Assembly (NCBI GenBank): GCA_946965045.2
Contig: OX337237.1
Span: 1,674,001-1,738,000, forward strand
DNA from: Epithemia pelagica
Taxonomy: Eukaryota; Protista; Bacillariophyta
Length of the DNA: 64,000 nucleotides
Direction of reading: 5' to 3'
Positions within the stretch are counted from its first letter, which is position 1, and every line of letters starts with the position of its first letter. Under the pieces are notes generated by a model. That model had not been told where the DNA came from. It was given only the letters and a program-made list of their open reading frames with translations, and did not search any database. A program made the translations under genes and the position numbers. Shown here in pieces: positions 34,470 to 55,560 of the stretch.

Positions 34470-34485
34470 CATTACCATGCAGAGG

Positions 34486-35051: not shown

Positions 35052-35351
35052 ATTTGTTGTGGTCCGAGCTCCTGATCTGCGAAAACAACGCCTTTTTTCT
35101 CTTGCTAGATGGAACCGTGTGCGTCCAGCAACGAACCTACCAGCAACAAGGTTCCCCGTCGCAACACCGGGAGGACCACTTACGGGGTCCGGAAAAATGG
35201 TCGTCTGTGTGTGGCCGGAGGGCTGTTCGTTCCCCCGCGTCGAAATGGCGCCAGGGCAGTCGGTCGAGTATCCGGCCGTGGGGGACCCCGCGGTCGCGGG
35301 TCCTGCCCACGGTTACGGTGCCGCGGCAGCTGAAATAGATGTTCCCAGTTC

Positions 35352-37221: not shown

Positions 37222-37299
37222 AGCATATCCAGGATGCAGAATGTCCGTTGGCGCCCGTCGTCCGTCGTGCCTTTCTGTTGTGTGGCCAACTGCCCCCCC

Positions 37300-37554
37300 T
37301 TACTGTGCTTAAGCTAATTTGGCGATTGCTGACAAGAAGATGAATGAACTGACACATGACTGACTCAGAGACCAAGAATCAAAGGACCAAGCCCAACCAG
37401 ATTCGTACGTATGTTGAATCAAGAAGATCTATCACCTTTGGTGATTTGGTTGGGATCGAATGTTGATCGGGTCACTGTCTTTCAGGTTGATTGTTGGTTG
37501 AGGTGCTATACGTTGCAGGTATTGTATCTCTCCTTGTGATCATCTGTTTTTGTT
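37300..37554 (+). repeat. Repeat A1 (255 bp)
   Basis: Identical by eye to 46110-46364. Confidence 0.95.
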
Positions 37555-37624
37555 CAGGTTGATTGTTGGTTGAGGTGCTATACGTTGCAGGTATTGTATC
37601 TCTCCTTGTGATCATCTGTTTTTG
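37481..37624 (+). repeat. 72-bp tandem duplication at the A1 end
   Basis: ttcaggttgattgttgg...tttttg occurs at 37481 and 37553; A2 has only one copy. Confidence 0.95.
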
Positions 37625-37657
37625 TTGCTTTTGTCGTTGCGCCCCGCCACTGCTCCC

Positions 37658-40495
37658 ATGTCTTCGTCCGGTTTCTCTGCTCGTGCGTCGCTTTATCGCG
37701 ATTTGCGTTCTGGTTCGCGTCCGCGTTCCGATTCCCCGGTGTCTTTTCCGCCTCCTGCTCCACCTGTGGGTCCGTCTCCTTCGGGCTCGCTTGCGGTGGC
37801 TTTCTCGGACTTAGGCTTGGGAGTGGGCGTTTCGACTGTGCAGGACTCGTCTGGGCTGGCCCCTGGCGCTCGCGCTGGTGGGTCTGCCTCGGATATGGGG
37901 GGGGATTTTGTGTCTATCCCTCCGGGCCGTTCTTTTGGTGACCAGTTCCTCGCGGACACTGGCGCCATCACGGACCCGGGGGCTAGTGTCGAGAGTCGCG
38001 AGTCTTTCTCCTACGGCGGAGGACTCTCTGACTCTGAGTTGCTCGCAGCGACTTTGCGTGCGGAAGCGCGTTATCCCGGTGATACGCGTGAGACTGCGGC
38101 TGCATTGAAGTCGGAGTCTGATCGCGAGCAATCGTCTTTGTTTCAGTCGATTGCTAAGCCGTCAACTGTGCGGGACAAGAGCCTGTTTGTGGACTACGGG
38201 ATTGCGAACTCCGCTACGGAGTCGCGTGGCGTCAAGTTTCAGTCGGACGTCAAGTCCAAACTAACGAATGGTGAGCCCCTCAATTCTAACCCGAGTGTTG
38301 TTGAGTTGCAGAATTCGGTTTCTTTAGTAGCGATAGATTTACAGACTGAAGTTTATTGTGGTGCGGTTGTGGGAGTAGCTGGAAAGTTTTGTTTGCACCC
38401 TGTGGGCAAATGCCCGAAGAAATCGCATCGCAAGGCCCCTTCGTTCCTTGGAAGTTTGAGCGAACAAGGGTTGAAGGAGTGCCTTTTCATTTGTGTCCCT
38501 GTTCCCAAGGGGAGCGCTCAGGGCACGCCGCCGACGTTGGCTTTTCAGGACCCGTTTCTTGATTCGAGTCGTCTCTCCCGTTCCAAGGTGCAAGAGATGA
38601 CGCAAACCCACAAGCCTGTCTGGCTGTGGTCATCCATGTTTGCTATGTTGAGTGGAGAGGTTCAAGGGAAGAATGTGGCCTCAATGTCCGGAGCCGGAGG
38701 ATCGTTTCCTGGCACGCCGTTGCGTCATCGGACTCTGGATCAGATTCAGGAAGATGCGACCCAGACGGCTTTTACGCCAGCTCGTCACCTGGAACTGGAA
38801 GACGTAGAGATACCATCTCCCGTGAGTGAAGGAAACGAACTTGAAGATGTAGACAGTAAGTTGGATGACACCACTTTCAAAGATCGAGTGGCTCACAACA
38901 CACTGGCCACGTCGCAAGTGCATCGAGCCATGGCGGGGGAACTTACTACCATGCGCTCTCGTCAAGTTGAGCAAAACCAAGTGCTTAACATGTTGGTTGA
39001 CAAGGTCAACGTCCTTAGTGGCCTCTTGGGAGCTCCACCGGATGACTCTGCAGCCACCACCGTCTGGCAAGCCATCAGTGAGTGGCAAGACCAAGAAGAA
39101 AAGAAAATCAATCCGGCGCTGCTCGACGCGATTCGCGAGACACAGTCTCTGCATGGGGCCAGTCTCCAACGCATGTACGAGTCGATTAACGCGTTGAGCT
39201 CGAAGATGCAAGATATGAAAACTGAGGCCCTCCACTCGTCAAGAAAGGAAGTCGTGGCATTGATCACGGCCGAAGTCAACAAGGCCATTTGGGCCGAATT
39301 ATCCAAGGCGTCTCCCACGTTGAAGGTTGCTGAGAAATTCTTTCTTCGCGGTGGATTGTCGGATTTCGAGCACCATATTCGAAAGACGACTGCGGATGCC
39401 GTCGCGGCCGCTGGGGGCAACAATGGGCAATCGTCACTGTTTAATTTGACTCAGCCAGAATTGGAAGATGTGAAAAAGCTTATTGCCAAGTTGCAAGAAG
39501 AAGGAGAACAGAATAAAATGAGGTTGATCGATTTGGAAGCGCGTACCGAAAGTTACTCTGTTGAAGTAGAGGGCTTTCAGTTCGCTTCATTGTCTCAAGT
39601 CACTGCTTTTGTGTCGTCCCATGGAATCGCTCCTGGTGTCTTAAAGTTCTGCGACGCCATCAGCCTTATGGAAAAATCGACCACGGGCTCTCAAAGCTAT
39701 GCCGAAAATGTGGACGCTCATTACCGCGGGCAACGCTCCAACATGGAGTCTCCAAGTGATCAAAAGGGTGTTTATTCGTTCCAACTGGTAGCGCCGACTG
39801 CGCTAGCCGGAACACCAGACCAAGCTCGGGTCAATCCAAGGAAGCTGTCCAAAATGGAGACATATCAAAAATTTAAGGGCTCAGGAGCCCGTGACGCAGG
39901 TGCAGCCAATACCATTCGAAAGATGATTGCGGATAAATGCCCTGCGTTGTTAGCGGAAGTTGAGAACTCGACGATGTCTCGAGACGCCAAAGTCATCGCA
40001 CGTTTTCTTCTCTCCGAATCCCGAAGTTTTCTCGACTCGTTGTTTATTTTCATGAAGGACCAGGTCGAGGACTATGGCTCGGACACCAACTTGTCCGAGG
40101 TCAGACGTTGGGACCTGGTCCAAAACATCACTCGAATCGTTTTCGAGGTCATCAGTCAGCCCCGAAGAACCTGTAGCGAGATCACTCTGAATCAGGCTAC
40201 ATCCCCGGAACGCGCACCGGAGCTTCTTTGGGCGGTGCTTCAAGCACATCGCTTGCAAAAGGAGTTTTTAGACCACAATTTTAAAAACCACCCAAAAGTT
40301 GGACCGATGCTGACACACTTCCTGCTCGATGTGGTCAGCTTCCACGACGACGTCAATCCCATTGTGGATGATGTGAAGAAGGCGCTGAATGATGCACAAC
40401 AAGCGAAGAGGAAGGTTGACGCAGTAGAAAGCCAGGTAAAGAATTTGCAATCGCGACTGCCGTCCAAGAAAACCAAACCGAATGAACAACAATGA
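37658..40495 (+). CDS. Gag-like ORF1 of element 1
   Basis: ATG at 37658. Cys/His knuckle CGAVVGVAGKFCLHPVGKCPKKSH, coiled coils, and a C-terminal FKNHP motif shared with element 2 ORF1. Confidence 0.75.
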   Translation: MSSSGFSARASLYRDLRSGSRPRSDSPVSFPPPAPPVGPSPSGSLAVAFSDLGLGVGVSTVQDSSGLAPGARAGGSASDMGGDFVSIPPGRSFGDQFLADTGAITDPGASVESRESFSYGGGLSDSELLAATLRAEARYPGDTRETAAALKSESDREQSSLFQSIAKPSTVRDKSLFVDYGIANSATESRGVKFQSDVKSKLTNGEPLNSNPSVVELQNSVSLVAIDLQTEVYCGAVVGVAGKFCLHPVGKCPKKSHRKAPSFLGSLSEQGLKECLFICVPVPKGSAQGTPPTLAFQDPFLDSSRLSRSKVQEMTQTHKPVWLWSSMFAMLSGEVQGKNVASMSGAGGSFPGTPLRHRTLDQIQEDATQTAFTPARHLELEDVEIPSPVSEGNELEDVDSKLDDTTFKDRVAHNTLATSQVHRAMAGELTTMRSRQVEQNQVLNMLVDKVNVLSGLLGAPPDDSAATTVWQAISEWQDQEEKKINPALLDAIRETQSLHGASLQRMYESINALSSKMQDMKTEALHSSRKEVVALITAEVNKAIWAELSKASPTLKVAEKFFLRGGLSDFEHHIRKTTADAVAAAGGNNGQSSLFNLTQPELEDVKKLIAKLQEEGEQNKMRLIDLEARTESYSVEVEGFQFASLSQVTAFVSSHGIAPGVLKFCDAISLMEKSTTGSQSYAENVDAHYRGQRSNMESPSDQKGVYSFQLVAPTALAGTPDQARVNPRKLSKMETYQKFKGSGARDAGAANTIRKMIADKCPALLAEVENSTMSRDAKVIARFLLSESRSFLDSLFIFMKDQVEDYGSDTNLSEVRRWDLVQNITRIVFEVISQPRRTCSEITLNQATSPERAPELLWAVLQAHRLQKEFLDHNFKNHPKVGPMLTHFLLDVVSFHDDVNPIVDDVKKALNDAQQAKRKVDAVESQVKNLQSRLPSKKTKPNEQQ

Positions 40496-43400
40496 GAAGT
40501 ACAGCGCCCATCCAAAAGATTAAAAAGGGAATCAAACACACAGGAGGAAAATCCTCTCACGGCTCTTCAAATTCAACGCAGTGAAAGCAGCAACGCCGAA
40601 ACTTACTCCTCGTGGATTCGACGCACAGTATCTTTAACACCGGGAGAGATGAGTTTGGGAGTGGTGTCAGATGGCATGCCTGCGTGGCTGTTTCTGTCTG
40701 ACAATTTGACAAACAGCAAACTCAAGTGGTTAATGTTGCCTGACAACCAACAACACTGGGAGAATTTGATACCGGTTGGACTTGAAGTTCATTGGTTGAC
40801 AGCAAGCGAAGAAAGTGAATGGAACCTGCGGTCTTTGGAAGAAGCGCTGGGACGATGCCCTGCAACCGACGTGTTGGTGTTTGAAGGGAAATACAGACCA
40901 CCCAGGGCAAGCTCCAACTTTTGGGACCGAGAAACAAGGTTGATTGTATCACAGCGGACACCAAGAGGCAAAGCACCGCCTGGATGGGACACCTCGTCTC
41001 GAGCTCTCAGTCACCATGAATTAGGGGGTGTGACCAATTGGAAGAGTTATTTTCATGTCTGGATGCGGTCGGCCGAATCATAATGCGACCCGAAGGAATT
41101 TTGGAACTCGGACTTATTGCATGGGGCCAATAGTTCTTTCGGGGATCTTATCGACAAGACAAAAACGGGAAAGCGAGTGCACCCTGATCGGGAAGAGGTT
41201 TCGATTCCCGGAACGGTGGATTGTGCTACAGTTCAAAGAAAACGAAGAAAGTTGTGGGTCTTACCCACAGTGTTTGGAGTCAACGCTGCCACCAGAAGGA
41301 AGTTGCTGGTTACAGAGGCTACTGCGTGCCTTGATGTGCCGGTCTCTTTGATCAAAGAATTGAATGAACCCACTCGGGAGGTTATTGTTCGTGAATTGTC
41401 CGGGCCTATCAAAGTGGCAGCGACAGTAGGAGCATGCATCGTCGAGTGGGCGAGAAAGAGTCGTAGACAAGAGAGAACAACGGAAGCAGGAGCAGCGTCT
41501 CCACAAAAAGAAGAAACAGAACTCATCCCTGATGAACCAAACGGTCGAGAAGCAAGATCGGTCTACCATCGAGATAGAATGCGAGGGTACCAACGATCTG
41601 CAAGTGAAGGCCAGGGCACTACCGCGGAGAAGGCAGTCAAACATGACAAAGCCGCCGTTCCGGTAGAATTATGGGACGATCGGGTTCGATATTTGTTGGG
41701 TCTGTCCAAATTGACGGATCGCCATCTGCGAGCTTTCGCGTTGTTACGACGAGCGATGTTGCAGCGATGGAGGCGCAACGTTGTTCGCTCGTGGGTTGAT
41801 TGGTGGAACAAATATAATCATAGAATAAAACATAATGAACCGCGATGGTGGAAGCTTTTGCAAGAGCGAGGTCGCCAAGCTTGTCGTCAAGCGATGCAGG
41901 CCGATTTTTGGAGTTGGCCAAATGGGTCAGGTGTATTCTTTTGGCGGTGGCCACAAGAATACATGCGTGATGTTGCCTTGGGAGTACCTCCTCTGTGGAC
42001 AGGTGTACCTCGGCAAGTGTTGGAACGACAACAAGGCCTTGGCGATGAAGAAATGATAAACAAAATAAAAGAGAAATTGGACGATGTTCGCCAGAAGAAA
42101 TATGTCAGCGAAGGAACCTGGAAGGCAACCATGAACTACTTTGCGGTGCCGAAAGGAGAGACGGACATAAGAATGGTGTATGATGGAACCAAGAGCGGTC
42201 TTAACGATTGCTTATACGCACCTTGGTTTCCTCTCCCAGATGCCGACGTCTTGATCCGTACCTTGGACGATTCCTACTGGTGTGTAGATAACGACTATGG
42301 AGAAATGTTCTTAAATTTCTGGATCCATCCGGAACTACAAGAGTTCAGCGGAATGGATCTCACACCACTATTTGGGGAAACCGATTCGGGGGAACTTCAT
42401 ATTGAGGGGTGGCTCCGTTGTCCTATGGGGCAGAGTCCGTCTCCTTTCAACACGGTACAGCAGACGCGGCGACTCAAGCGCGTTATGTTGGGTGACCCGA
42501 GTGACGAAGAAAACGTGTTTCGATGGAAGAAAGTACGATTGAATCTACCCGGAACGATGAGCTACCAACCCGGAATTCCCTGGATAGCCAAGTACAGATC
42601 CACGGGAGAGTTGGCAGCCGATGCCCATGATTATGTGGACGATCTACGAGGAACTGGTCCCACAGCCGAAGATGCCTGGCAAGTAAGTTCTAAGATTGCC
42701 AAAACAGCGTCGTTTCACGGCGTACAAGATGCGGCACGTAAACGACGAGAGCAGACACAGAGTCCGGGAGCATGGGCTGGAGTAGTCTGTGGTACCAGTC
42801 CTCGTCGTCCCTTCAAAGCTGTGACCCAAGAAAAATGGGACAAGACGAAGGGAGAAATAAAACGTCTACGCGATGAAGTGGACAACCTGGAGATGGCCGC
42901 TCCTAAAAACACTGTTAACAGCAAAGTCCTTGAACAGGTTGCAGGGTTTTTAAATCACATCGGCCGAGCTTATGGAACTCTACGGCTCTACCTCAATGGA
43001 GTATATGCATCCTTGAACAGTTGGAGGCCTGATCGAGACCACGAGGGATGGAAGATCGGCTCTGACACATTGCATTTGGAAGAGCCCTTGGGCCTGAAGA
43101 CGCCAGCCCGAGTTCGAATGGTGCCCCGAATGCGATTTGATGTCGAAGCTCTGGAGTTGTTGACCAGCAGCTCTACCCCTCCTCAGAGATTGTTGAGGCC
43201 TGACAAACAAGGCGCCGTTGCCCGGTATTACTTTGGTGATGCCTCGGGAGCTGGCTTTGGCATGTCAGGGTGGACACCGGGTGAAGACCAAATCGAGGTA
43301 GATTTCGGATCTTGGGATGCCAAAGCAATGGATTGGACTTCTTCCAACTTTCGTGAATTGGCCAACATTGTAATGAAGATCGAGCAAATGGCAAAAGAAG

Positions 43401-44227
43401 GCCGTCTGAATGCGTTGACGGAAACCTTCATTTTTACCGACAACATGCACGCGGAGTCGGCATTTTATAGAGGGACTGCGAAGTCTCCCGAAGTGTTGCA
43501 CCTCATGCTCCGGTTGCATCGAGTCCTGATGAGAGGAGAGGCGTTCATTCATGTCGTTTGGGTGGCTGGGAAAAGGATGATATCCCAAGGCACCGATGGA
43601 CTCTCCCGATCTGATTTGACAAGCGGAGTCATGCGAGGTGAAAGCATGTTGAACTTTGTTCCGCTTCATCAGTCAGCTCATCAACGTCAACCCAAAGTAC
43701 TCTCGTCCTTGTTGCGCACCATAATCGACGACACCGACGATGTACGCGTCTTGAATCCTGAGGACTGGTTCACCCAACCAGCCGAAAGGGATGGCATATT
43801 TGTGTGGATGCCTCCGCCGTGTATTGCCGATGTGGCAGTCTTCATGATGGCGGAGGCATGGCATCTTCGTCCGTGGAATACCCATGTTTTCATTGCACCG
43901 TCATTGATGAGTGGAACGTGGAGGAGGATGTTGTCCAAGACGGCGGATATGTTTTGTGTTCTGCCGTTTAATAATGAATTCTGGCCCAAAGATTTGGAAC
44001 ACGAACCTCTAACGTTTGCGTTCGTATTCCCCCTTTTGAACAGAAATCCTTGGCGAGTTAAGTTCTCGGAGCTTCTCCGCGATGAACGAAATGTCTTGCG
44101 TCAGATGCACCGGAAGTCTCTCCCACACGCGAGGGATTATCTGCGCAAACTTTGGCTATGCGCGCGGGCACTGGAAGCCATGCCTGGGGGCGTATCACGC
44201 TCATTGCTATGTAGTACCGGGAACTGA
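40496..44227 (+). CDS. Pol of element 1 (MTase-like, Trp-rich, RT, RNase H, Dam-like), with one internal TAA
   Basis: Same frame as gag. RT motifs DNDYGEMF, MGQSPSPF, YVDD (42632); RNase H GDASG, NFREL, FTDN, DGLSR; WMPPP block. Track ORFs 40649..41083 and 41117..44227 are one frame split by the TAA at 41081. Confidence 0.9.
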
Positions 44228-45620
44228 CCCCTTTCCTAGAGACCTCCAACCTAGACAAATGGAAATGGATGCATTTGGAAACATGGTGCCCGAAGCTGAG
44301 GGATGGGAGACTACAGCTACTGAAAAGAAGGCTCTGTCTGAATGGTTTTGTCAAGCTCGCCCGGGAGATCATCTAATGACTCCGTTCCAGTGTGAATTAT
44401 GTCACTTTAGAAATATTTACAAGCGTGATCCGGTACCGACGAGCGAAGAAGACAAGTGGTCGCTCAAGTGCATGATACGAGCGAACCTCGATGCCTTTTG
44501 GGCGCGACGTTCGAGCACAGTGCAAGGTAATACAAGGGAAATGGCGAGATCAATGCGCATTCTCGCCACACTCCGGATTCCATCTCCAACGACTGTTCAC
44601 CGGCGAGGACCTTACCCGATTGAAGACACTCTTGGAATGGTACCAGCGATGGTTTCGCTGCAACGGTCGCTAGACAAAGGAAGAAATTCAAAGACGATCC
44701 AGTGGGACACAATGAGAGGAGTACGATCCTCTTTCTCAAACTTTGTTCATACAACACTCACCGGGAGCAAAGGAGCTGTGTTGAGTGATGGGAAACGCTC
44801 GACCAGGATTACCGATAGTGTGGCAAACTCCCTCTGGTTCAAGCGCTTTATGGATGGATGCCATGAGCGCATGGGAGATGTCAAGATACAAGATGCCGCG
44901 CTGACAATTGATGTGTTATTGGAGCTCGAGAGATGTTTGGAGGAAGAATTTCAACGAATGGACTCAAACAGTACCATGGAAGTCCGATTCGAAGTGATCA
45001 CTCTCGGCGCGGCTTTGGTCCTGGGATTCTCAAGTGCTCTGCGTGGCGAAGAACTGGGTCATATCCGGCTTATGGAAAGTCGAGAACTGACCGCAAGGGG
45101 ATTGAATCATCCGAGGTACCCTCATGTCCTCTTAGCCCTTGAAGGAAGGTTCAAGGGATTGATTGCGAGACAAAGGCATAAGATTCCGCTAGCACCAGTG
45201 TCTCAGTCAGGAATTCCGAACGAAAAATGGTTATTGCGATTGGTTGAGCTTTATGATGATCTAAATATCAGACATGGACCTCTGTTTCGTGCCACCCCAC
45301 GGGGAGATAAATCAATCACCATTCAACAACTGGATTTGTGGCTGAGTGAGACCTTGATGGCAGTACAAAAGCAGAGGCCAGATTTGTTGGGAACGGAATT
45401 GGAATCTCTGGCTACTTACAGCTTTCGGAGATCCTTGAGAAGAGGTTCCACCACCCAAGCGAGAAATCAGAAGGTTCCAAAAGACGTCATTGTCATCAAT
45501 AACCGGTGGAGGTCTCAGGACCAGGCTCGAGGACGCTTCGCACAAGCCGACATGATCGATCTGTATACTGATGTGGTAGCAGCTTTGGCCACACTACTTC
45601 AATACTCAACCGCATTATGA
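44082..45620 (+). CDS. Tyrosine recombinase of element 1 with an N-terminal Cys-rich region
   Basis: ALRGEE (Arg at 45042), RSLRRG, NRW, and a terminal DLY (Tyr at 45564). It overlaps the pol 3' end in another frame. Confidence 0.88.
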   Translation: MNEMSCVRCTGSLSHTRGIICANFGYARGHWKPCLGAYHAHCYVVPGTDPFPRDLQPRQMEMDAFGNMVPEAEGWETTATEKKALSEWFCQARPGDHLMTPFQCELCHFRNIYKRDPVPTSEEDKWSLKCMIRANLDAFWARRSSTVQGNTREMARSMRILATLRIPSPTTVHRRGPYPIEDTLGMVPAMVSLQRSLDKGRNSKTIQWDTMRGVRSSFSNFVHTTLTGSKGAVLSDGKRSTRITDSVANSLWFKRFMDGCHERMGDVKIQDAALTIDVLLELERCLEEEFQRMDSNSTMEVRFEVITLGAALVLGFSSALRGEELGHIRLMESRELTARGLNHPRYPHVLLALEGRFKGLIARQRHKIPLAPVSQSGIPNEKWLLRLVELYDDLNIRHGPLFRATPRGDKSITIQQLDLWLSETLMAVQKQRPDLLGTELESLATYSFRRSLRRGSTTQARNQKVPKDVIVINNRWRSQDQARGRFAQADMIDLYTDVVAALATLLQYSTAL

Positions 45621-45678
45621 AAGAAGGAGAAAAGATTTGCTGAGAAGAATTTTATCAAGACGATACGGGGGGGGGGGA

Positions 45679-46109
45679 AAGGAGTGTACTCGTACACTCT
45701 GTCGTTTGCAAACCCACTGTTGGAGGATGACGGGGTTCGGAGTTATTGGGGTTCTGGTTTGCTTGCACTCTGGCAGGTGCTTGCAAAGTGGACAGTGATA
45801 GCGGAGGTTCGCCCCGCGTGCTGACTCGTGATTCGTCTCGAGGACCACCGGCTTCGGGACTCAGAATTTTCTACAGGGGGCGAGAGCAAGACCAATCTTG
45901 ACAGCGATTGGTTTGCGTCGATTTTGATGGCTGTTGCACTATGATGTGACTACCCATCGCTCCATTGGGAAGGAGTTCCCCTTACCTTAGCACAATATAA
46001 TCTAGGATTGTATGTGACACATCCCAACGTCTAACATCAAGACCTATTGCCACACTGGTTGAAGAGTTGGAAGAAGTTTTGGACATTCATCGGAGAGGAG
46101 TCAAGTGCC
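45679..46109 (+). repeat. Repeat B1 (431 bp)
   Basis: Matches 46389-46629 plus 55371-55560 with 2 mismatches seen (45710/46420 and 46087/55538). Confidence 0.95.
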
Positions 46110-46364
46110 TTACTGTGCTTAAGCTAATTTGGCGATTGCTGACAAGAAGATGAATGAACTGACACATGACTGACTCAGAGACCAAGAATCAAAGGACCAA
46201 GCCCAACCAGATTCGTACGTATGTTGAATCAAGAAGATCTATCACCTTTGGTGATTTGGTTGGGATCGAATGTTGATCGGGTCACTGTCTTTCAGGTTGA
46301 TTGTTGGTTGAGGTGCTATACGTTGCAGGTATTGTATCTCTCCTTGTGATCATCTGTTTTTGTT
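46110..46364 (+). repeat. Repeat A2
   Basis: Copy of 37300-37554, directly abutting B1. Confidence 0.95.
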
Positions 46365-46388
46365 TTCCACCCTCCCGCCCTGCGTTAT

Positions 46389-46629
46389 AAGGAGTGTACT
46401 CGTACACTCTGTCGTTTGCGAACCCACTGTTGGAGGATGACGGGGTTCGGAGTTATTGGGGTTCTGGTTTGCTTGCACTCTGGCAGGTGCTTGCAAAGTG
46501 GACAGTGATAGCGGAGGTTCGCCCCGCGTGCTGACTCGTGATTCGTCTCGAGGACCACCGGCTTCGGGACTCAGAATTTTCTACAGGGGGCGAGAGCAAG
46601 ACCAATCTTGACAGCGATTGGTTTGCGTC
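46389..46629 (+). repeat. Repeat B2, left part (241 bp)
   Basis: Copy of 45679-45919, ending at gtttgcgtc. Confidence 0.95.
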
Positions 46630-47147
46630 TCAATGTACACCCAAGTTAAGATGGGACCAAGGAACATGGTCAGGCCACGTCATGAAGGCTGAGCATTGGC
46701 GTTGGAGTGCAAGTCGGGCGGTCCACCCAAAAGAAGAGCCGGCCTCGCTGTCACACAAAGAATGAGGCAGAACGGGCGTGCAACTCGGAAGAGGAAATTC
46801 CAAAAAGAACATGTGCATCCCATCTACTGCGACAAAGCCTCTTCCATTCCATATCTCAAAGTGGACTGCCTCCAAATAGAGGATCGTCCGATTCAAGAGG
46901 CATGGGCACTCTTGAATCAAACAACAATGCGCCAACAATGGATCCCTAATGGAGCGCGACATGCGATCCATGACAAACAAGCAAAGACGCAGCAAACAAA
47001 ACAAGAGGGACACGGAGAGCTCACTCTTTGGGTTTTCTACGGTTCGTCGGCGAAGGTCTGATCCCCTTTGGCGCCGTTCTTGATTTCTAAAGAGTTGAAA
47101 CTCCAACTTTCTCTGCTCACTTCGCTCTCTTACTTACTCCTTCTACC

Positions 47148-49604
47148 ATGTCGGTTCCTCCTCCTCCTCCTCCTGCACAGGATGCTGATACGCTCCTCTC
47201 TGCGCTCGTTGCTTCGGCCTCCGTGGCTAACACCCCTGCGGCTGGGGCCGCCCGTCCTTCTACGGCGGCTCTGGGGGGGGATCGCGGTCAAATCTCCTTT
47301 GCTGCTGACCCTCCCACGGATGAGATGATGGTTCAAGGCACGGAAACCGCATTGTTTCCTGAGAGCACCATGGACCCTACTGTCCTTGGACGCTCTACCG
47401 GTGGTAGTAAGTTTGGTGTCGTGGCACTTTGCGCAAGCGAATGTGCAGACAAGTTGTTGTGTTTGGATCTCAAGCGCGGCGGGGCAACCTTTTGCATCGA
47501 CCCCAAGTGCGCTAAAGCCGGGGACCATGGAACTGGTCTAGCTCCCGTCGACTTGGGACCCTCAGGAGGATTGTTCATTACCAAGAACCCTGCCTCTGCC
47601 TTTTGCACTCCGGTTATCTCGTTGAGTGAGATCTCTCAGGAGACACTGGACCAAGTCCAGCATGAAAAACACACTATGGAAGAATGGACGAAGAAATTCG
47701 TTGCTATGAAACGTCTTAATCAAGTTAAGAAAGAAGGTCACCTGGATGCCAGTCTGAAGGAAACGGAGCATAAAATCTCCAAGGCTGACTCCCTCCGTAC
47801 CCCGTTTACACTCAAGAAAGCTACCTCTACCTCCACCTCCTTCGTCGTTGAGAATTTCTCTCCTCACCACAAGATTTTGGACGGGGATCTACAGGATGTG
47901 ATTCGGAAGATTACGGTTGACTCCTCCTTGGTTCCGATAACTCTTCGCGAAATCGAAGACTCGGTGATGGAAGCAGGAGAAGTGATCCAGACTTTGTCCT
48001 TGGAACAACAAGCCATTTCGCGTCAAAACAGCACAGCCGTTGAAGCTCTAGGAATCAAATTTGATAAACTGTCCATGGAAATTGGACCTCGAGAGGACTT
48101 GCCGGACGAGTACCAAGCCCCGACCCTCTGGGGAATCATCTCTTCGATGATTCGTTCCATTCAAGAATCCTCTCCCTTGACGACTGAATCTCACCAACGT
48201 GCTGTGGATAGTCGCCTTGCCGCGGTTGAGTCCTCTGTTGCTACTTTCTTCTCAACCATCCAAGGCCAAGTCTCTTCGAAGTTGTCCTCGACCCAAGTTG
48301 AGACTCGTAACTCGGTAGACAAGCTTCGAAACCAATTCGTGCAAGGCTTCAAAGGAATCCTCGATCGCTTGTCGGCCCTTGAATCCAACACGACGCTCAC
48401 CAACCGTATCTTGACCATTGAAAACAAGATGTCGTCCCATGAAATTTTGCTTAGCCAACTGGGAACCTCCCCGCAGATGTTTGGTGCAACACAGACGACA
48501 TCCAACACAGGATCACCAGCCCTTCAAAACAAAGTCACTGCTCTTGAAGGGGAAATCGCGAATTTGAGGGCCCTCTTGGGAGATGCCAATTTGGAAATGC
48601 AACGTCTCAAGGGCAAGGTCGACACTTCCACCATCAAGTTCGGAAATCTCGGCGTAGCAACGGTTGATGACTGCAAAGCCTGGGTGGCCCTCAAGTTCGG
48701 GTCAAGAGCGTACGGTCTTTTGTTTGATCTCAACTTGGTGCTTGAATGGTGTGCCCCGCAGGAGAATGGGGATGTTTTATCCATGCTGACTACCATGGAA
48801 AAACGACACAAGATGCAGATCGCGACAACAAATGAAGCTCGAGCGATTTATGCGATGAAGAATGAATTTCCCCAGCTCTTGTACAAAGATTTCCCTGGCA
48901 CCGGGCGGGACCCTTCGTTTCTCACTGCGATGAAAGAGTACTCGGATTGGGAGTCGCCCGAGACGGGAGTTCGTGACCGAATCCTGAATCGTCTAGGCAA
49001 CATGAATTCTATGTTCGGAGAACAAATTGCCACAACGATGGCCAATGAACCTGAAGCCCGTTCCTTAGCTTTATCTATGCTATCTGTTTCGGTGGGTTGT
49101 TGCCGTGAATTGGTAACCTATTTTGATGAAACCATGAATGAACTCACTATCAAGTCGAAGTTTACTACCCGCAAGGCCTTCAGTTTGGTTACCCAAGTGG
49201 TCAGGCGCTTCTTCATGGACTTATACAAGGTTAGGGCTCAAGTCTACTCGTCCCTTTCGACCACTGATAGTGCTGGCCAGTGCGCATGGATACTCTACGG
49301 CGTTCTTCGTACCCACGATGTTATGAGCGATTACGTTGAAGCTCGTTTCAAGAACCATCCGTCCGTTTCAAGCGAATACATTCGCTTCCTTTCCACCAAC
49401 TCGGGCTTCGAGTCCCTCAAGACGCTAGAAGATCAAGTGGAATCCTTGAAGCGTACCTCTGCTCAGTTGGTCAAAGATGTTACCTCGGCCAAGAAAGCTT
49501 CCGACACGGCCAGCAGCACTGTGGACAGTGTCAAAAAGGATGTGAACGAATTGAAGAAACAAGCCCAGCGTCGTGGTGGATCTACCAACGGTGACAAGAA
49601 GTGA
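47148..49604 (+). CDS. Gag-like ORF1 of element 2
   Basis: 818 aa. Knuckle CLDLKRGGATFCIDPKCAKAGDH, coiled coils, FKNHPSV. Confidence 0.78.
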   Translation: MSVPPPPPPAQDADTLLSALVASASVANTPAAGAARPSTAALGGDRGQISFAADPPTDEMMVQGTETALFPESTMDPTVLGRSTGGSKFGVVALCASECADKLLCLDLKRGGATFCIDPKCAKAGDHGTGLAPVDLGPSGGLFITKNPASAFCTPVISLSEISQETLDQVQHEKHTMEEWTKKFVAMKRLNQVKKEGHLDASLKETEHKISKADSLRTPFTLKKATSTSTSFVVENFSPHHKILDGDLQDVIRKITVDSSLVPITLREIEDSVMEAGEVIQTLSLEQQAISRQNSTAVEALGIKFDKLSMEIGPREDLPDEYQAPTLWGIISSMIRSIQESSPLTTESHQRAVDSRLAAVESSVATFFSTIQGQVSSKLSSTQVETRNSVDKLRNQFVQGFKGILDRLSALESNTTLTNRILTIENKMSSHEILLSQLGTSPQMFGATQTTSNTGSPALQNKVTALEGEIANLRALLGDANLEMQRLKGKVDTSTIKFGNLGVATVDDCKAWVALKFGSRAYGLLFDLNLVLEWCAPQENGDVLSMLTTMEKRHKMQIATTNEARAIYAMKNEFPQLLYKDFPGTGRDPSFLTAMKEYSDWESPETGVRDRILNRLGNMNSMFGEQIATTMANEPEARSLALSMLSVSVGCCRELVTYFDETMNELTIKSKFTTRKAFSLVTQVVRRFFMDLYKVRAQVYSSLSTTDSAGQCAWILYGVLRTHDVMSDYVEARFKNHPSVSSEYIRFLSTNSGFESLKTLEDQVESLKRTSAQLVKDVTSAKKASDTASSTVDSVKKDVNELKKQAQRRGGSTNGDKK

Positions 49605-52600
49605 CGGTGTGCCGCGCCTAAACTAGATGAAAACGTTTCGTATGTTGACTCTGGTTTAGACGCTGGTAGTATTGCATCATCTTTAAGCAGTCTGGGACCT
49701 GGCTCTCCTGGTGGTGTTGGTGCCAAACGTCCAGCCTCACCACCCCCTAGCATTGTCGTTTCGGTCAAACGCTCCAGGCATCGTCCTACTGATCGCGGAT
49801 CACGGATCTTCCGAAGTGATTTGTCGTGTCTTATCCTTGGTCAAACATCCCTTTCGTGGGGACTTGGTCTCAGTCTCGGGGACTGGCACGGCATTTACAT
49901 GTTGGCTGCTGAGTATGAAGCACGACGAGAGAACCCCTTTTGGCGTGCCGTTTTGCTTCATTTTGGGGATAAGCTCCACTTAGTCCCAAGCATCGATGTT
50001 GTTCTGGGACGAGGGATCATTTCGGTTGTACTGTTGGAAGGCGATCCTGATTACCTCGCGTCTTCCTTGCTTTTCGTCCCTCCGAGTTGGCCTGTTTTAT
50101 TGTTGCTTCCTTCGGGATGGAGTCGCCCCACCCTTCCTCAAGTCCAATGGTTGTCGGTCACCCATCGTCAATGTGGTGGTGTCACGACCGCTTGTGTCCA
50201 CGTTGGGCGTCGTGGTATACCTCCGTTGTTTTTCCATGTCACCACGCGGCGCACGCTGGGTTCGATCATCTCGCATTCAATCCGTCCTTCCCCGTGTGGG
50301 GCGCCCACTATCCCTGATCCTTATTACTCCTGTGACGATCAGTTGCACACCCGTGCTCTTTTCAAGTCTATTCGGTTGTCCACACACTTTTCAAAGACGG
50401 GTTGGGGTTGTCGTCCGCTTACTGATGAAGAAATTGGAACGGCGTTCGATTTACCGCTTTGGGTCATCAATGATTCCATTGCTTTTCGTTGGTGGTTCTC
50501 CCACATGATTCATCCGCGAGTTACTCCCATCAAGATCCCAGCTTTAGTGTTGAATTCCGCTTTACCACACTTGGACCCTGTTCTGATTCACCACACTAGT
50601 ACCGCCGGCAACAAACATGGTGGACCCTCATCCCCGTTTCGTCCCTGCAAACGCGGCCGTTGGTTGACCCCTCTTTCGGAAACTGTCCAAGATGGCGTCC
50701 TGGGTACCACCTTTTCCTTCTTGCCCGCTTTTCTCCCTCATGACGCGTGGCTCGACGATTCCAAGATTGCGGATATTGCGGTTAAGGCAGACGACGCCCT
50801 GGCCCCTTTTTGGATTTGGGATGGGCGGATTCGGGGCATCTACCCTTGGATCACAGATTCGGCGCTTTCAGGCTTCCGCTTGTTGGCTTTGCTTTGGTGG
50901 CGTCGCTCCTTGGTGCAGAGTTTCTTGGCTTATTTACGCTTGCGGTTTGGTGCGAATTGGCCAGCCTTAGTGGCCTCTTCACCACTCCAGGGGGGGGAGG
51001 AGTCTTTCAATTTCGATTCGTTTCCCGTCCTGCTAGCCGCTGGCCGCTGTGTTTTGTCCCAACTTCTTCGTTCCACCTGGTGGGACTGGGATGCGGGTTC
51101 TTCGTTGATTTTTTGGCGCTGGAACGGCCTCTCCCAACAAGCAGATGCCTGGTTTGGCACTCCCATCCATGTCACCGATGCTCTTCCTTCTTATCATCGG
51201 CGTCAGCGTGCTCCTCCTGCGGAAATGCTCCCTCAAGTTTCCAAGAAATTATCGACCGTGCTCGAGCGTGGTTATTTGGACGGTGTCTCTCCTCCCTCCA
51301 GCATGACCGACTATTTCGCTGTTCCAAAAGGCGACAATGACATTCGGATGGTCTATAATGGCACAAGCTGCGGGTTGAATAAGTCTCTGTGGGCACCGAA
51401 TTTTTGGTTACCAACGTCTGAGTCGGCTCTACGACTATTGACCACCGATTCCTACTGTGGGGACATGGATTTGGGGGAAATGTTTTTGAATTTCCCCATG
51501 GACGTACACCTTCGACCCTTTGCTGGTGTAGACATGAATCCTGTCCAGTCACACCTCACCCCAGAAGCTACAGCCCTCTCTCCTGAATCTGGTAGGGTGC
51601 GGTGGAATCGTTTATTTATGGGTATGCTTCCGAGTCCGTTCCACGCCGCCCGCCAATACTACCTGGCTGAGGAAATAGCAAAAGGAGCATCACAGGATCC
51701 AACCAATCCGTGTGGTTTTGATTCAATTCGCTTCAACATCCCTGGCTCCGCCGATTACACCCCAACTTTGCCTTGGGTCATGAAGTGGAGCTCTAGACTC
51801 GACAACATTACGGGAGATGTAGTTACCTACATGGACGACTTGCGAACGGTCGGTTCCTCAGCCGAACATGCATGGCAGGTGGCACGCCAACTGGGGGCTA
51901 GATTGCAATATCTAGGAATTCAAGACGCACCTCGAAAGCGGAGACCACCTTCCAAAACTCCCGGCGCATGGGCTGGCAGTGTACACCATATCTCAGCCAC
52001 GACCATATCAAAAACCCTCACCCAAAAGAAATGGGACAAGGGCAAGAAACTCCTGGAAAAATACGTGGATGCATATACCAAGAGTGACTCTCCCACGTTC
52101 GATCACAAGCAAATGCAACGAGACGTGGGCTTCTTCGTTCATCAAGCGCTGACCTACAATTCGCTAATGCCCTTCTTAAAGGGATTCTATTTGACTATGA
52201 ATGTTTGGAGACCCGGGCGCAATGGCGAGGGATGGAAGCTGTCAACAAGGGAGTGGCTTTCCCAGTTACAAGAAAAGTTTGGGGACGAAGAAATCAACAC
52301 CATTTGTGGTTTCTTAGACACAGATGAAGATGAAGACTCGCATGCAGAATCAACCAACAAAGAAAAGGACATTCCACCAGCACGGGTCAAGGCAGTTCCG
52401 AGGCTGCGAACCGATGTACGAGCCATTGCGGTCATGCTAGGTTCAGAGGATCCTCCCAAGGTCCAAGTCAGGTCGGACACCATCTTTGTTGCATTATTCG
52501 GATGTGGCGATGCTTCGGGATGTGGATTCGGGGCAGCCTTCCAACTCCCTCAAAAGAAACTGTCGTATAGAGTGGGAGCATGGGGAAAGGACATCGTGGT

Positions 52601-53531
52601 AGGTGAATCTTCCAACTGGAAGGAGTTTACCAACTGTGTAGAGTCGCTGGAGGAAGAAGCGTCCTTGGGCCATTTGGACAACACAGAAGTCTTCTTCTTC
52701 ACAGACAACTCAACCGTCGAACGTTGTTTCTACAAGGGCTCATCATCAAGCCCAAAACTGCTAGAACTAGTGATCCGTCTACGACGACTAGAGATGCGCC
52801 ATGCAATACGGCTGCATATCTCCCACGTATCAGGAAAGAGGATGATCGCTGTGGGAGTGGATGGCATTTCTAGAGGGCAATTGAACGAGGGAGTCATGGC
52901 TGGGACTCCCATGTTATCCTATATTCCTCTTCACAAGACCCCATTCCAGATGTCCGAGAATCTGTTCGAATGGGTTCGTTCTTGGTTGGGACCCAAAGCA
53001 GAAGCACTAACCCCCATGGACTGGTTCACAACAGGCCACGACATCCGGGGATGGTCCCTCCCAACAGAACATAACAAACTGTCCCTGCCTATCCTTCGGC
53101 CAGGACATTTTGTGTGGGCTCCGCCTCCAGGAGCAGCTGATGTGGCTCTCGAGGAATTGAGAAAAGCGCGTCACAAAAGACAATCTTCCATGCATGTTTT
53201 TCTTTGTCAACGTCTGCTTACTCCGAAATGGTATAAGCAGTTACACAAGGCATGCGATTTGGTTATGGAGATCCCTGCTGGAACTTCTTTTTGGCCTGAA
53301 GGAAATTATGAACCTCTCATCGTTGGTCTTGTTTTTCCTTTTATTAGGGCACAGCCGTGGCAATTGCGGGGCACCCCAAAAATGTTCTCAATGGACCGCC
53401 AATTGCGCAAATTGTGGAAAGAAGATCCAGTGGGTGGAAGGGATCTTCTGCGGAAATTTTGCGTTCAGTGTTGGAAAATGCAGTCCATGTCGAAACGCAT
53501 GGTGCGCAAGTTGTTATTCTTCGAACGATGA
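49605..53531 (+). CDS. Pol of element 2 (MTase-like, Trp-rich, RT, RNase H, Dam-like), intact
   Basis: Open frame directly after the gag TGA. Motifs DMDLGEMF, MGMLPSPF, YMDD, GDASG, NWKEF, FTDN, DGISR, WAPPP. Confidence 0.92.
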   Translation, partial: RCAAPKLDENVSYVDSGLDAGSIASSLSSLGPGSPGGVGAKRPASPPPSIVVSVKRSRHRPTDRGSRIFRSDLSCLILGQTSLSWGLGLSLGDWHGIYMLAAEYEARRENPFWRAVLLHFGDKLHLVPSIDVVLGRGIISVVLLEGDPDYLASSLLFVPPSWPVLLLLPSGWSRPTLPQVQWLSVTHRQCGGVTTACVHVGRRGIPPLFFHVTTRRTLGSIISHSIRPSPCGAPTIPDPYYSCDDQLHTRALFKSIRLSTHFSKTGWGCRPLTDEEIGTAFDLPLWVINDSIAFRWWFSHMIHPRVTPIKIPALVLNSALPHLDPVLIHHTSTAGNKHGGPSSPFRPCKRGRWLTPLSETVQDGVLGTTFSFLPAFLPHDAWLDDSKIADIAVKADDALAPFWIWDGRIRGIYPWITDSALSGFRLLALLWWRRSLVQSFLAYLRLRFGANWPALVASSPLQGGEESFNFDSFPVLLAAGRCVLSQLLRSTWWDWDAGSSLIFWRWNGLSQQADAWFGTPIHVTDALPSYHRRQRAPPAEMLPQVSKKLSTVLERGYLDGVSPPSSMTDYFAVPKGDNDIRMVYNGTSCGLNKSLWAPNFWLPTSESALRLLTTDSYCGDMDLGEMFLNFPMDVHLRPFAGVDMNPVQSHLTPEATALSPESGRVRWNRLFMGMLPSPFHAARQYYLAEEIAKGASQDPTNPCGFDSIRFNIPGSADYTPTLPWVMKWSSRLDNITGDVVTYMDDLRTVGSSAEHAWQVARQLGARLQYLGIQDAPRKRRPPSKTPGAWAGSVHHISATTISKTLTQKKWDKGKKLLEKYVDAYTKSDSPTFDHKQMQRDVGFFVHQALTYNSLMPFLKGFYLTMNVWRPGRNGEGWKLSTREWLSQLQEKFGDEEINTICGFLDTDEDEDSHAESTNKEKDIPPARVKAVPRLRTDVRAIAVMLGSEDPPKVQVRSDTIFVALFGCGDASGCGFGAAFQLPQKKLSYRVGAWGKDIVVGESSNWKEFTNCVESLEEEASLGHLDNTEVFFFTDNSTVERCFYKGSSSSPKLLELVIRLRRLEMRHAIRLHISHVSGKRMIAVGVDGISRGQLNEGVMAGTPMLSYIPLHKTPFQMSENLFEWVRSWLGPKAEALTPMDWFTTGHDIRGWSLPTEHNKLSLPILRPGHFVWAPPPGAADVALEELRKARHKRQSSMHVFLCQRLLTPKWYKQLHKACDLVMEIPAGTSFWPEGNYEPLIVGLVFPFIRAQPWQLRGTPKMFSMDRQLRKLWKEDPVGGRDLLRKFCVQCWKMQSMSKRMVRKLLFFER

Positions 53532-54918
53532 GGGTCGGTTCTTTGTGGCTTCCAGGAACTTGATGGTGGAAGAGTCGGACGCGGACCGGATCGTAGCAGC
53601 CACTTGGAGAGCGCGTACAAAGGACCGACGAGAAGATTATAGTCATGCACGAGCGGGTGATCACTTGATGACCCCTTTCGAGTGTGATTGGTGCATCTTT
53701 CGAAAGTTGAGAGGTGAGGAACCGGACCCGAAAAGCGTGCAAGACAAGTACTTGATGGTGTGTGTGAGACGCATGAATCTCGATGCATTTTGGAGTCGGG
53801 CAACAAGCACGGTTGCGCAAAACACTAGAAATGCCAAAAAGATGATTGAGAAGTCAATGAAAGTGGGAATCCCTTATGGACCGTTCATGAGCCATGGCCC
53901 GTTCCCGAGTTACGATCATTGTGGGTACCAAGTGGCATATTTGATGTTGGACAGTTCGTTGGACGAAGGAAAGTATCATACGGATAGAAAGCAATTTGAC
54001 ACCATCCGGAAATTTCGATCGGTGTACTCCAATCACGTGAGAGCAACACCGGCCACTTTGGTTGATAATCGACCCCTGGTTTTGACGGACAATAATGGGA
54101 AAGCCTTCTCTCGGTTGGGCCAAGACGAGAGCGGATCATTATGGTTTTCAAGATTTGTTGAAGGTTGTCGCCGACGGATGGGCCAAGACTGGCGCCCGGA
54201 CCAAGCAATATCTAGCGAGTTGGTTGTTGCGTTGCTGGGTTCCTTGGAAGAAGAATTGAGGCACGCAAACAATGTGACGGACCCATTTGTGACGGTTATG
54301 GCGGGAACCTTTTATGCTGTGTCTTTCGCTTTGTCCTTGAGAGGGCCGGAGGGGCTGCTCCTTGATTTAGGAGCCATGACTCGATATGCAGATCTTTACA
54401 AGGACCGGGATTGCGTGGTGGTTTGTCTTTGGGGCCAATTCAAAGGCGAGCATTCTGAACGGGCTCATCTCCTCCCCTGCTGCAATGTAACAGGGAGTGG
54501 AATCAAAGTTCGCCAATGGTTGAACAGAGCAATGGTCTTGTCTCGAGACATTGGACGAACGACCGGGCCGTTGATGATGGATCGAAAGGGTGTACCCATC
54601 GCGCCACGAATGCTGGATGACATCCTGCATCGACATTTGTGCAAACTTTTCGACAACGATAAAAACCTTTTTCCTCTGACTGTCATCAAAGGGGAAGAGG
54701 ACATCGTCACAAAATACTTTGTGTTCCGATCTTTCAGACGGGGTTGGAATACAAGAGCAAAAGAGGTGGGCGTCGAGCAGCCAGACCTTGAAACTGTCAA
54801 CCGATGGAGAATAAAGGAGAGAGCAGGAGCCAATAAACCAGGCGGGGCCATTGACCACATGTATGCAGACCTGTCGATGCTTGTGGGGCCGTTTCTCCGG
54901 TACAGTTCTGCAATGTGA
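53194..54918 (+). CDS. Tyrosine recombinase of element 2 with an N-terminal Cys-rich region
   Basis: SLRGPE, RSFRRG, NRW, terminal HMY. It overlaps the pol 3' end; the true start is uncertain. Confidence 0.88.
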   Translation: MFFFVNVCLLRNGISSYTRHAIWLWRSLLELLFGLKEIMNLSSLVLFFLLLGHSRGNCGAPQKCSQWTANCANCGKKIQWVEGIFCGNFAFSVGKCSPCRNAWCASCYSSNDEGRFFVASRNLMVEESDADRIVAATWRARTKDRREDYSHARAGDHLMTPFECDWCIFRKLRGEEPDPKSVQDKYLMVCVRRMNLDAFWSRATSTVAQNTRNAKKMIEKSMKVGIPYGPFMSHGPFPSYDHCGYQVAYLMLDSSLDEGKYHTDRKQFDTIRKFRSVYSNHVRATPATLVDNRPLVLTDNNGKAFSRLGQDESGSLWFSRFVEGCRRRMGQDWRPDQAISSELVVALLGSLEEELRHANNVTDPFVTVMAGTFYAVSFALSLRGPEGLLLDLGAMTRYADLYKDRDCVVVCLWGQFKGEHSERAHLLPCCNVTGSGIKVRQWLNRAMVLSRDIGRTTGPLMMDRKGVPIAPRMLDDILHRHLCKLFDNDKNLFPLTVIKGEEDIVTKYFVFRSFRRGWNTRAKEVGVEQPDLETVNRWRIKERAGANKPGGAIDHMYADLSMLVGPFLRYSSAM

Positions 54919-55370
54919 CGACCAAACCAAGATTCTCGGTGGAGGGGGTTTCTGGAACTGGCAAGTTGCGTTGAGGCTGACATGGCAAGGCCTCTTCGGT
55001 TCTTGTCCATTAGAGAGAGAGTTTGAGCCGATTGCGTCCCCTGTCCGTTTCCGCCTTTGCGATTGCATGGTGCAACCTGATCGCGTTGGTGGGCCACAAG
55101 CGGATCCAACAGGAGTCTTGATTTGGGTCTTTCTTTTTGTTCTTTTGGGCCGGTTCCCCTGTCTGAGCATTATGCCAGATCGGACCCTGAGTGGTGAAGG
55201 ATTACCCTTCCCCCCACAACACAACCTAAACTAGAGTTTACGGTTGCGAGAATCTAATGAGATAAGTTTATGATTTGATTCTGCTGTTTGTCTTTGTGTT
55301 TGCGCGAGAGAAAGGGATCCTGAGGTTGGATGGCGACATGGTGGGTGCTGAGCAGGGTTTGCGAGTGCCC

Positions 55371-55560
55371 GATTTTGATGGCTGTTGCACTATGATGTGA
55401 CTACCCATCGCTCCATTGGGAAGGAGTTCCCCTTACCTTAGCACAATATAATCTAGGATTGTATGTGACACATCCCAACGTCTAACATCAAGACCTATTG
55501 CCACACTGGTTGAAGAGTTGGAAGAAGTTTTGGACATACATCGGAGAGGAGTCAAGTGCC
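55371..55560 (+). repeat. Repeat B2, right part (190 bp)
   Basis: Copy of 45920-46109 with one mismatch. Confidence 0.95.

Follow-up and report, generated by a model that had tools for sequence, protein, structure and literature searches.

Two nested, deeply diverged elements in the diatom Epithemia pelagica read as members of an essentially undescribed lineage of tyrosine recombinase retrotransposons

The stretch of DNA analysed in this study, here called the window, comprises 64,000 nt of the genome of the diatom Epithemia pelagica (contig OX337237.1, positions 1,674,001 to 1,738,000; contig ctg1359l, 2.06 Mb, in the assembly ENA ERZ21939226), and all coordinates given below are positions within it. 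Analysis of open reading frames (ORFs) revealed two sets of gag-like, pol, and tyrosine recombinase (YR) genes between positions 37298 and 55560, both on the + strand, of which the first belongs to element 1 and the second to element 2 (46630-55369). Thus, the two complete gag-pol-YR cassettes in tandem orientation that an earlier inspection of this stretch (the original prediction) had proposed are indeed present, and the outer coordinates given there correspond exactly to the ends of element 1. No further pieces of either element were found elsewhere in the window. In element 1, the gag-like ORF1 (37622..40495, 945-957 aa, first ATG at 37658) ends with a TGA at 40493-40495 and is followed in the same frame by pol (40496..44227), which runs from 40496 to 41083, is interrupted by a TAA at 41084-41086, and continues from 41087 to 44227. 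This last part encodes a Trp-rich region, a reverse transcriptase (RT) with the motif YVDD and an RNase H (~42041-43675), and a C-terminal tail (43661-44113). The YR ORF (44040..45620, with ATGs at 44082 and 44259) lies in frame pol+1, with an overlap at the 3' end of pol. In element 2, ORF1 (47148..49604, 818 aa) likewise ends with a TGA (49602-49604, next base C) and is followed in the gag frame by an open pol of 1,308 codons (49605..53531), encoding an N-terminal alpha/beta domain (49932-50588), a disordered spacer, a Trp-rich helical region (50733-51215), an RT (YMDD) with RNase H (51216-52940), and a tail (52926-53420). Its YR ORF (53161/53194..54918) again overlaps pol in frame pol+1.

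Comparison of the two sets at the protein level revealed 34% identity over 941 aa for pol (E 5e-154) and 31% for the YR (E 2e-70), while the gag-like proteins were alignable only across their C-terminal ~250 aa (21% identity, E 1e-8). In a midpoint-rooted FastTree phylogeny of 167 RT-RNase H sequences, from which near-identical rows and fragments had been omitted, both elements were placed in distant clades.

The ends of element 1 consist of direct repeats that are distributed over its two sides. Repeat A1 (37298-37554, 257 nt) is 100% identical to A2 (46108..46364), and the second type of repeat is composed of a B block (45679-45919 and 46389-46629, 99.6% identity) and a C block (45919-46109 and 55370-55560, 99.5% identity), all on the + strand. 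In the first of these repeats, B1 (45679..46109, 431 nt), both blocks are contiguous at 45919, and B1 is directly joined to A2. This is followed by a 24-nt spacer (46365-46388), by the first 241 nt of the second repeat, B2 (46389-46629; spacer and B2 start together 46365..46629), by the 8,740 bp of element 2 (46630..55369), and by the last 191 nt of B2 (55370..55560), giving the overall order A1 - ORFs - BC - A2 - 24 nt - B - 8,740 bp - C. The left terminus of element 1 reads TTACTGTGCTTAAG, starting at about 37300, and its right terminus ...GGAGTCAAGTGCC, ending at 55560. At the join of B1 and A2, the right end is followed immediately by the left end (...GGAGTCAAGTGCC and then TTACTGTGCTTAAG...), and the same relation of join and ends was found in two further loci of the same assembly, L004 and L089. 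An internal end-to-end copy of this kind, the "circle junction", is a hallmark of elements of the order DIRS. Judged by its repeats, element 1 is a split-direct-repeat element of the A1-ORFs-B1A2B2 type, with the B1-A2 join as the copy of the circle junction. Just 5' of gag, the final 74 nt of A1 are tandemly duplicated (extra copy at 37553-37626; region 37481-37626), and only one such unit occurs in A2 and in L004.

Locus L004 represents a second copy of element 1 on another contig of the assembly, with 98.9% identity over 9.1 kb and all three ORFs open. It is organized as A1 - ORFs - BC - A2 - 24 nt - BC, and its second BC repeat is uninterrupted. Since B2 is uninterrupted there, element 2 is a later insertion into the terminal repeat of element 1, so that the predicted nesting of two elements is borne out. 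As read from B1, where the insertion site corresponds to GGTTTGCGTC^GATTTTG, element 2 is a precise insertion into the last repeat of element 1, with 0 bp duplicated and 0 bp lost. Element 1 itself is flanked in the window by ...CTGCCCCCCC on the left and AATGTTCG... on the right, and in L004 by ...AACCTTCCTC and TATGAGTA..., and no duplication was detected at either locus.

Element 2 consists of a single A-body-B unit with the termini TCAATGTACACCC...GCGAGTGCCC, in which a search for direct, terminal, split, or inverted repeats and for an internal end-to-end junction copy revealed none. Inverted terminal repeats were found in neither element. The closest relative of element 2, locus L089 (78% amino acid identity in pol, ~71% at the DNA level), is organized as A1 (484 nt) - body - B1 (427 nt) - A2 - 55 nt - B2, and its termini as well as its B1-A2 join (...GCGAGTGCCC and then TCAATGTACA...) are the same as the two ends of element 2. 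Based on this match, element 2 is a single unit with authentic ends, for which two origins are proposed: either A2 was removed by recombination between B1 and B2, or a monomeric form was integrated.

The near-identical terminal repeats of the original prediction were thus recovered with 99.5-100% identity, but all of them belong to element 1, and element 2 has none. Its conclusion that the identity of these repeats indicates recent activity is not supported, since A1 and A2 in split-repeat elements, unlike long terminal repeats (LTRs), are not reset to identity by replication. Better evidence for recency would be the second copy with 98.9% identity, the intact ORFs, and the insertion of element 2 into element 1. 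The copy of element 1 in the window, in turn, is defective through a nonsense codon in pol: its TAA at 41084-41086 interrupts the conserved N-terminus (40496-41080 matches positions 8-147 of the pol hidden Markov model, E 1e-17), and the equivalent codon in L004 is GAA, with pol open at this position.

To assign the ORFs, we used Pfam searches, searches of family profiles built from 24-35 members against 177,635 PDB sequences (reported up to E<=10), AlphaFold models compared via Foldseek, and hhalign for comparisons with methyltransferases. Relatives were sampled from 80 fetched metagenome loci and the genome copies. None of the seven ORFs matched a Pfam family at E<=0.01, and even at E<=10 only RVT_1 (E 0.069, pol of element 2) and a spurious match to A24_N_bact were obtained; with this E 0.069 as the best value, RVT_1 missed 22 of the 24 pol proteins of the family. 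Profiles of the whole pol and of the RT-RNase H part found no RT or RNase H among the PDB sequences, but just low-complexity or chance matches. At the structural level, the AlphaFold model of pol of element 2 (1,200 aa, pLDDT 77.9, pTM 0.71) matched the RT and RNase H of cauliflower mosaic virus (CaMV, E 5.7e-15) and also those of foamy virus, murine leukemia virus (MLV), Ty3, and human immunodeficiency virus over 540-690 columns, with E values from 1e-12 to 6e-15 across this set. All of the top 500 structural matches of the whole model were RTs, and matches in BFVD comprised caulimovirids, retroviruses, and hepadnavirus P. At the level of predicted structure, it is thus confirmed that pol carries an RT-RNase H fold of the retrovirus/caulimovirus type. 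In line with this, the Asp of RT motif A, Y(V/M)DD, and the RNase H residues D (GDAS), E, D (TDN), and D are invariant across 35 members.

The model further suggests the following domain order for pol of element 2: a disordered start (aa 1-37), an alpha/beta N-terminal domain (~40-255), a disordered spacer (257-321), a helical Trp-rich region up to ~465 (consensus ASWWxWDxGSxPFFWRWP), the RT (~466-830), whose motifs B and C are separated by an additional beta hairpin of ~30 aa, the RNase H (~855-1035), and an alpha/beta tail (~1040-1200). Both the Trp-rich block and the RT insert, which had been noticed before, are found in the two elements and throughout the family. The same cannot be said of the methyltransferase-like N-terminus and the Dam-like tail of the original prediction. 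Apart from a resemblance of 19 residues to motif IX of C5-methyltransferases (19 columns of RRxLxxxExxxxxDxP against Dcm RRLTPRECARLMGF, hhalign probability 2.4%), comparison of the N-terminal domain with Dam and Dcm was negative, and the single match to TPMT among 33 N-terminal domains (E 0.03) was judged to be noise. The tail reached a probability of only 0.2% against E. coli Dam and, with ~160 aa, is too small for a Dam-type enzyme. Methyltransferase families of Pfam matched none of 24 pol proteins and none of 35 tails, and profiles of the tail and the N-terminal domain found no methyltransferase among the PDB sequences, only low-complexity or chance matches. Similarity of the N-terminal domain to terminal proteins was also not detectable. 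As noted before, neither a protease nor an integrase was seen: Pfam matches for protease (RVP), integrase (rve), or endonuclease domains were absent from the ORFs.

The third ORF of element 1 yielded an AlphaFold model (pLDDT 81.8) that matched Cre, XerH, and lambda Int with a Foldseek probability of 1.0, so that a Cre-like YR fold is confirmed in the model. The conserved residues are R321, K358, R450-x-x-R453, W476, and Y495 (numbering of element 1), and this catalytic set R-K-RxxR-W-Y is kept across 26 members, with R450 being nearly invariant and R453 invariant. The family consensus R-S-x-R-R-G thereby displays RxxR at the position where HxxR is canonical. None of the 26 YRs matched PF00589, and the YR profile found no recombinase in the PDB set. 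All loci carrying both genes show an overlap between the 3' end of pol and the YR ORF, which lies in frame pol+1, and this overlap encodes a conserved Cys-rich N-terminus, a zinc-finger-like extension of the YR. The Cys-rich YR with RxxR described before was therefore recovered in both elements and is conserved across the family.

In the gag-like proteins, no CCHC knuckle (CX2CX4HX4C) was found. A Cys cluster of the form C-x10-C-x6-C followed by His is conserved in the family (aa 246-269 in element 1, window 38350-38430; aa 95-127 in element 2) and may represent a different zinc-binding module. The in-frame TGA between gag and pol (40493-40495 in element 1, 49602-49604 in element 2) turned out to be a family trait, as gag and pol share one frame across a single stop codon at 34 of 49 pol 5' boundaries, and 33 of these 34 stops are TGA and one is TAG. 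The base after the stop is C in 18 of 30 cases, with UGA-CUA being recurrent; UGA-C and UGA-CUA contexts favour read-through in eukaryotes. At nine loci (L052, L057, L064-L066, L076, L081, L082, L084), pol lies in the -1 frame with a gag overlap of 30-45 nt, with six of these loci grouped in a single clade of the RT-RNase H tree. By these signals, the family appears to use both classical retroviral gag-pol strategies, stop read-through and -1 frameshifting. The lineage of element 2 additionally harbors a long, stable hairpin 3 nt past the UGA of gag (49605-49675 in the window, 5713-5785 in L089; z ~ -2 in both), which may act as a stimulator of read-through, and a comparable hairpin was not seen in element 1 or L004 (z about 0). 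Taken together, the statement that the two elements share every architectural oddity was too strong. The UGA, the Trp-rich block, the RT insert, and the RxxR are common to both, but element 2 lacks the A2-B2 redundancy, and the additional TAA occurs only in element 1.

A survey of JGI metagenomes revealed at least 487 loci of the family. The RT-RNase H profile, run against 1.84 billion representatives clustered at 50% identity, detected 1,695, 5,815, and 9,997 proteins at E<=1e-30, 1e-10, and 1e-3, respectively. Searches with pol and YR resulted in hundreds of matches, all named "hypothetical protein" and all but one without a precomputed Pfam domain, the exception being P0266 with a match to PF00078; in UniRef, one member from Fragilariopsis cylindrus is named "Reverse transcriptase domain-containing protein". 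All named hosts are diatoms, namely Epithemia clementina and F. cylindrus, and taxon names looked up for clusters of ten further clades yielded none. L001, the metagenome element that clusters with the F. cylindrus member, showed the same layout of gag (770), pol (1238), and YR (453). Generally, the elements have a length of 8.7-9.7 kb, an unusually large ORF1 of 700-950 aa, and a pol of ~1,250-1,300 aa. ENA contigs of 0.4-2 Mb harbor a third pol clade (P0019-P0032) with ~40% identity to element 1, and at least two of its proteins are encoded on contigs equal in size to contigs with genes similar to those of element 1. Probably, no fewer than three deep lineages of the family are present in the host genome. 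The searchable literature on YR, DIRS, or Ngaro elements in diatoms yielded generic listings of transposable element classes only and no dedicated description of this family. The view of an old, coherent, and poorly described family is supported, and we read the family as a lineage of YR retrotransposons that is deeply divergent and has essentially not been described.

Variant forms were also detected. In L054, a metagenome contig of 26.9 kb, copies that are 99.98% identical follow one another head to tail (357-13613) every 8,112 nt. Terminal redundancy was seen in the metagenome contigs L008 and L035, and repeats were entirely absent from L012 and L013. In L003, from the same assembly as the window, a Copia-type LTR element (13345-21206, with an RVT_2 ORF and 300-nt LTRs at 13345 and 20907) interrupts pol near its 3' end in an element similar to element 1, whose remaining pol sequence and YR continue from 21647.

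Based on the RT-RNase H and Cre-like folds, the split direct repeats, and the lack of a target-site duplication, the earlier identification as YR retrotransposons holds, and both units very probably are autonomous-type members of one large, deeply diverged family. Their cycle may be pictured as follows. The genomic RNA would be translated into the gag-like ORF1 product and, by leaky read-through of the UGA or by -1 frameshifting in one sublineage, into a gag-pol fusion, with pol supplying the N-terminal domain, the disordered spacer, the Trp-rich helical region, RT, RNase H, and the small C-terminal alpha/beta domain. The YR would come from the +1-frame ORF that overlaps pol at its 3' end. By analogy with the DIRS/Ngaro model, the cDNA would then be closed into a circle, with the B1-A2 join as template for the junction of right and left end, and the YR would recombine this junction with a target defined only loosely by a pyrimidine-C immediately 5' of the crossover, without target-site duplication. 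For the locus itself, the proposed history is that element 1 integrated first as A1-body-B1-A2-B2, that element 2 later entered B2, and that element 1 has since gained its nonsense codon in pol.

Several points weigh against this picture. Transcription, read-through, circles, and transposition are all proposed from sequence comparison. The circle model is borrowed from DIRS/Ngaro, and DIRS-1 itself has been reported with a linear single-stranded cDNA intermediate (PMC7192593). Element 2, L012, and L013 are without split repeats, so that terminal redundancy may not be obligatory. Moreover, the proposed cycle provides no mode of translation for the YR ORF, a cryptic protease or primer function is possible in the N-terminal domain, the Trp-rich region, or the tail of pol, and L008, L035, and L054 fit circles, tandem arrays, or the assembly of split repeats alike.

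Among known systems, the closest in layout is the Ngaro superfamily of the order DIRS (Goodwin and Poulter 2004). Features characteristic of the order DIRS (Wicker 2007) were found, i.e., RT and RNase H, a YR with no match to a DDE integrase or endonuclease, no target-site duplication, and the copy of the junction. Furthermore, element 1, L004, and L089 carry split repeats of the type A1-ORFs-B1A2B2 downstream of the YR, as described for Ngaro, while the copy of element 2 in the window does not. By published structural descriptions (PMC4157794; PMC6681497; PMC8547959), the family is thus a group of DIRS-order YR retrotransposons with Ngaro layout. It is not DIRS1-like, as inverted terminal repeats are absent, and not PAT-like, as no methyltransferase was detected: the ~160-aa tail does not qualify as the enzyme that follows the RNase H in both groups. 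LTR retrotransposons (Gypsy, Copia, Bel-Pao) do not fit either because of the split repeats and the missing RVP and rve matches.

The elements might therefore be ordinary members of a catalogued superfamily, most likely Ngaro or the "DIRS" of Repbase or a diatom library, with the Pfam failures reflecting fast evolution within Ngaro; we regard this as possible rather than probable. The layout is exactly Ngaro-like and without a detectable methyltransferase (PMC4157794, PMC8547959): gag is followed by RT-RNase H and then by the YR, the internal repeats come behind the YR ORF, and no integrase, protease, or target-site duplication was seen. Derivatives with partial repeats also occur on both sides, namely the solo AB repeats reported in Ngaros of Cafeteria (C. 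burkhardae; PMC8547959) and the A-body-B unit of element 2. In addition, the annotation of transposable elements in F. cylindrus, whose genome holds family members, includes a "DIRS" class (bioRxiv 10.1101/2025.04.02.646770), so that some copies may already be recognised by automated annotation, and the PF00078 match of P0266 and the UniRef name of the F. cylindrus member point in the same direction. On the other hand, the Cafeteria Ngaros are ~6 kb in size, are detected by PF00078, PF17919, and PF00589, and carry the HxxR motif (PMC8547959), while the present elements measure 8.7-9.7 kb, their RT, RNase H, and YR escape these three models (RVT_1 and PF00589 as given above), and the canonical His-x-x-Arg box is replaced by RxxR in a YR with a Cys-rich extension inside the pol overlap. 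Family profiles reached no RT or recombinase in the PDB set, pol contains ~450 extra N-terminal residues (N-terminal domain, spacer, and Trp-rich region) and ~160 extra C-terminal ones, and gag and pol are linked by putative UGA read-through. The 9,997 proteins found at E<=1e-3 are also far below what mainstream RTs would contribute, so that the profile presumably misses them.

Set against these descriptions, a new lineage at the superfamily level, distinct from DIRS, PAT, Ngaro, and VIPER, can be put forward only tentatively. PAT-like and DIRS1-like elements resemble the family in gag and RT/RNase H, in a YR ORF overlapping pol, and in an extra domain after the RNase H (PMC4157794), and PAT-like elements also in split direct repeats, but the defining methyltransferase was not detected in the tail of the family, and, in contrast to DIRS1, the inverted terminal repeats and the internal complementary region are lacking and internal repeats follow the YR. 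VIPER and TATE of kinetoplastids are likewise highly diverged YR retroelements of protists, and TATE forms tandem clusters (PMC6681497), comparable to the head-to-tail copies of L054. However, both occur in other hosts, no sequence similarity to them was seen, with no search aimed at it, and VIPER is without conserved terminal repeats, while element 1 and L089 carry clear split repeats. If the lineage were indeed a new superfamily, its combination of pol and an RxxR-type YR with a zinc-finger-like extension would represent an independent union of retroelement and recombinase, which may replicate with non-canonical priming or circularisation. The mode of gag-pol expression can further be compared with read-through in MLV, where gag and pol also share one frame across a single leaky stop; the hairpin 3 nt past the stop in the lineage of element 2 adds to this likeness. 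MLV differs in using UAG with a downstream structure, while the family uses UGA, often as UGA-C or UGA-CUA, conservation of its downstream structure does not extend to the lineage of element 1 (z about 0), and its read-through is predicted.

That the copies are endogenous forms of an unrecognised reverse-transcribing diatom virus, with ORF1 as capsid protein and a possibly protein-primed pol paralleling hepadnavirus P, seems improbable. The domain order of pol with its disordered spacer at 257-321, the hepadnavirus P and caulimovirid polymerases among the structural matches, the unusually large ORF1, and many near-identical contigs of 8-10 kb across samples, some of them terminally redundant, would be in accordance with such a virus. 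However, these structural matches cover the RT/RNase H core only, hepadnaviruses are not ranked first, and the N-terminal domain is without detectable similarity to terminal proteins. In addition, no ORF of envelope or movement type is present, the copies are chromosomal with YR-type junctions and split repeats, and particle evidence is missing. Least credible of all is the idea that element 2 is not nested but a chimera that obtained the A and B repeats of element 1 upstream and C downstream via template switching or ectopic recombination, which would account for its lack of own repeats between repeat blocks of element 1, but was rejected, since B directly adjoins C in B1 as well as in the two repeats of L004, the first and last bases of element 2 equal the termini and the B1-A2 junction of L089 at an unrelated locus, and the interrupted sequence of element 1 is otherwise unchanged.

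Regarding the surroundings, the remainder of the window contains genes for an ABC transporter (7464-12212, - strand), an intron-poor UPF1 helicase (22078-25596), an EEP plus Mut7-C nuclease (30760-33042), a tetrahydrofolate (THF) dehydrogenase/cyclohydrolase (57458-58159, - strand), and a 2-hydroxyacid dehydrogenase (58561-59865, - strand). With these neighbours, the elements are located in gene-dense euchromatin and not in a repeat island. Upstream of element 1, pairs of direct repeats of 65-82 nt, spaced 101-105 nt apart (34000/34105 and 34486/34587; 92-98% identity; 34000-34651), were detected in and just after an ORF without Pfam match (33372-34469), and a near-perfect palindrome of 44 nt (34965-35054, 89% complementary, 2-nt loop) lies between host ORFs.

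YR retrotransposons are considered to be rare and to have a patchy distribution. In this study, the sequence clusters of one YR lineage were found to number in the thousands across marine and freshwater data, and several of its deep sublineages look active in a single diatom genome. Since the standard models for RT, RNase H, and integrase miss the family, its members are labelled "hypothetical", and repeat and gene annotation of diatoms as well as RT censuses of plankton probably under-count it. The family also provides comparative material for the unsettled replication of YR retroelements, as it includes UGA read-through and -1 frameshift forms as well as split repeats, single units, and tandem arrays, and it adds a new data point to the question of whether the union of retroelement and recombinase arose more than once.

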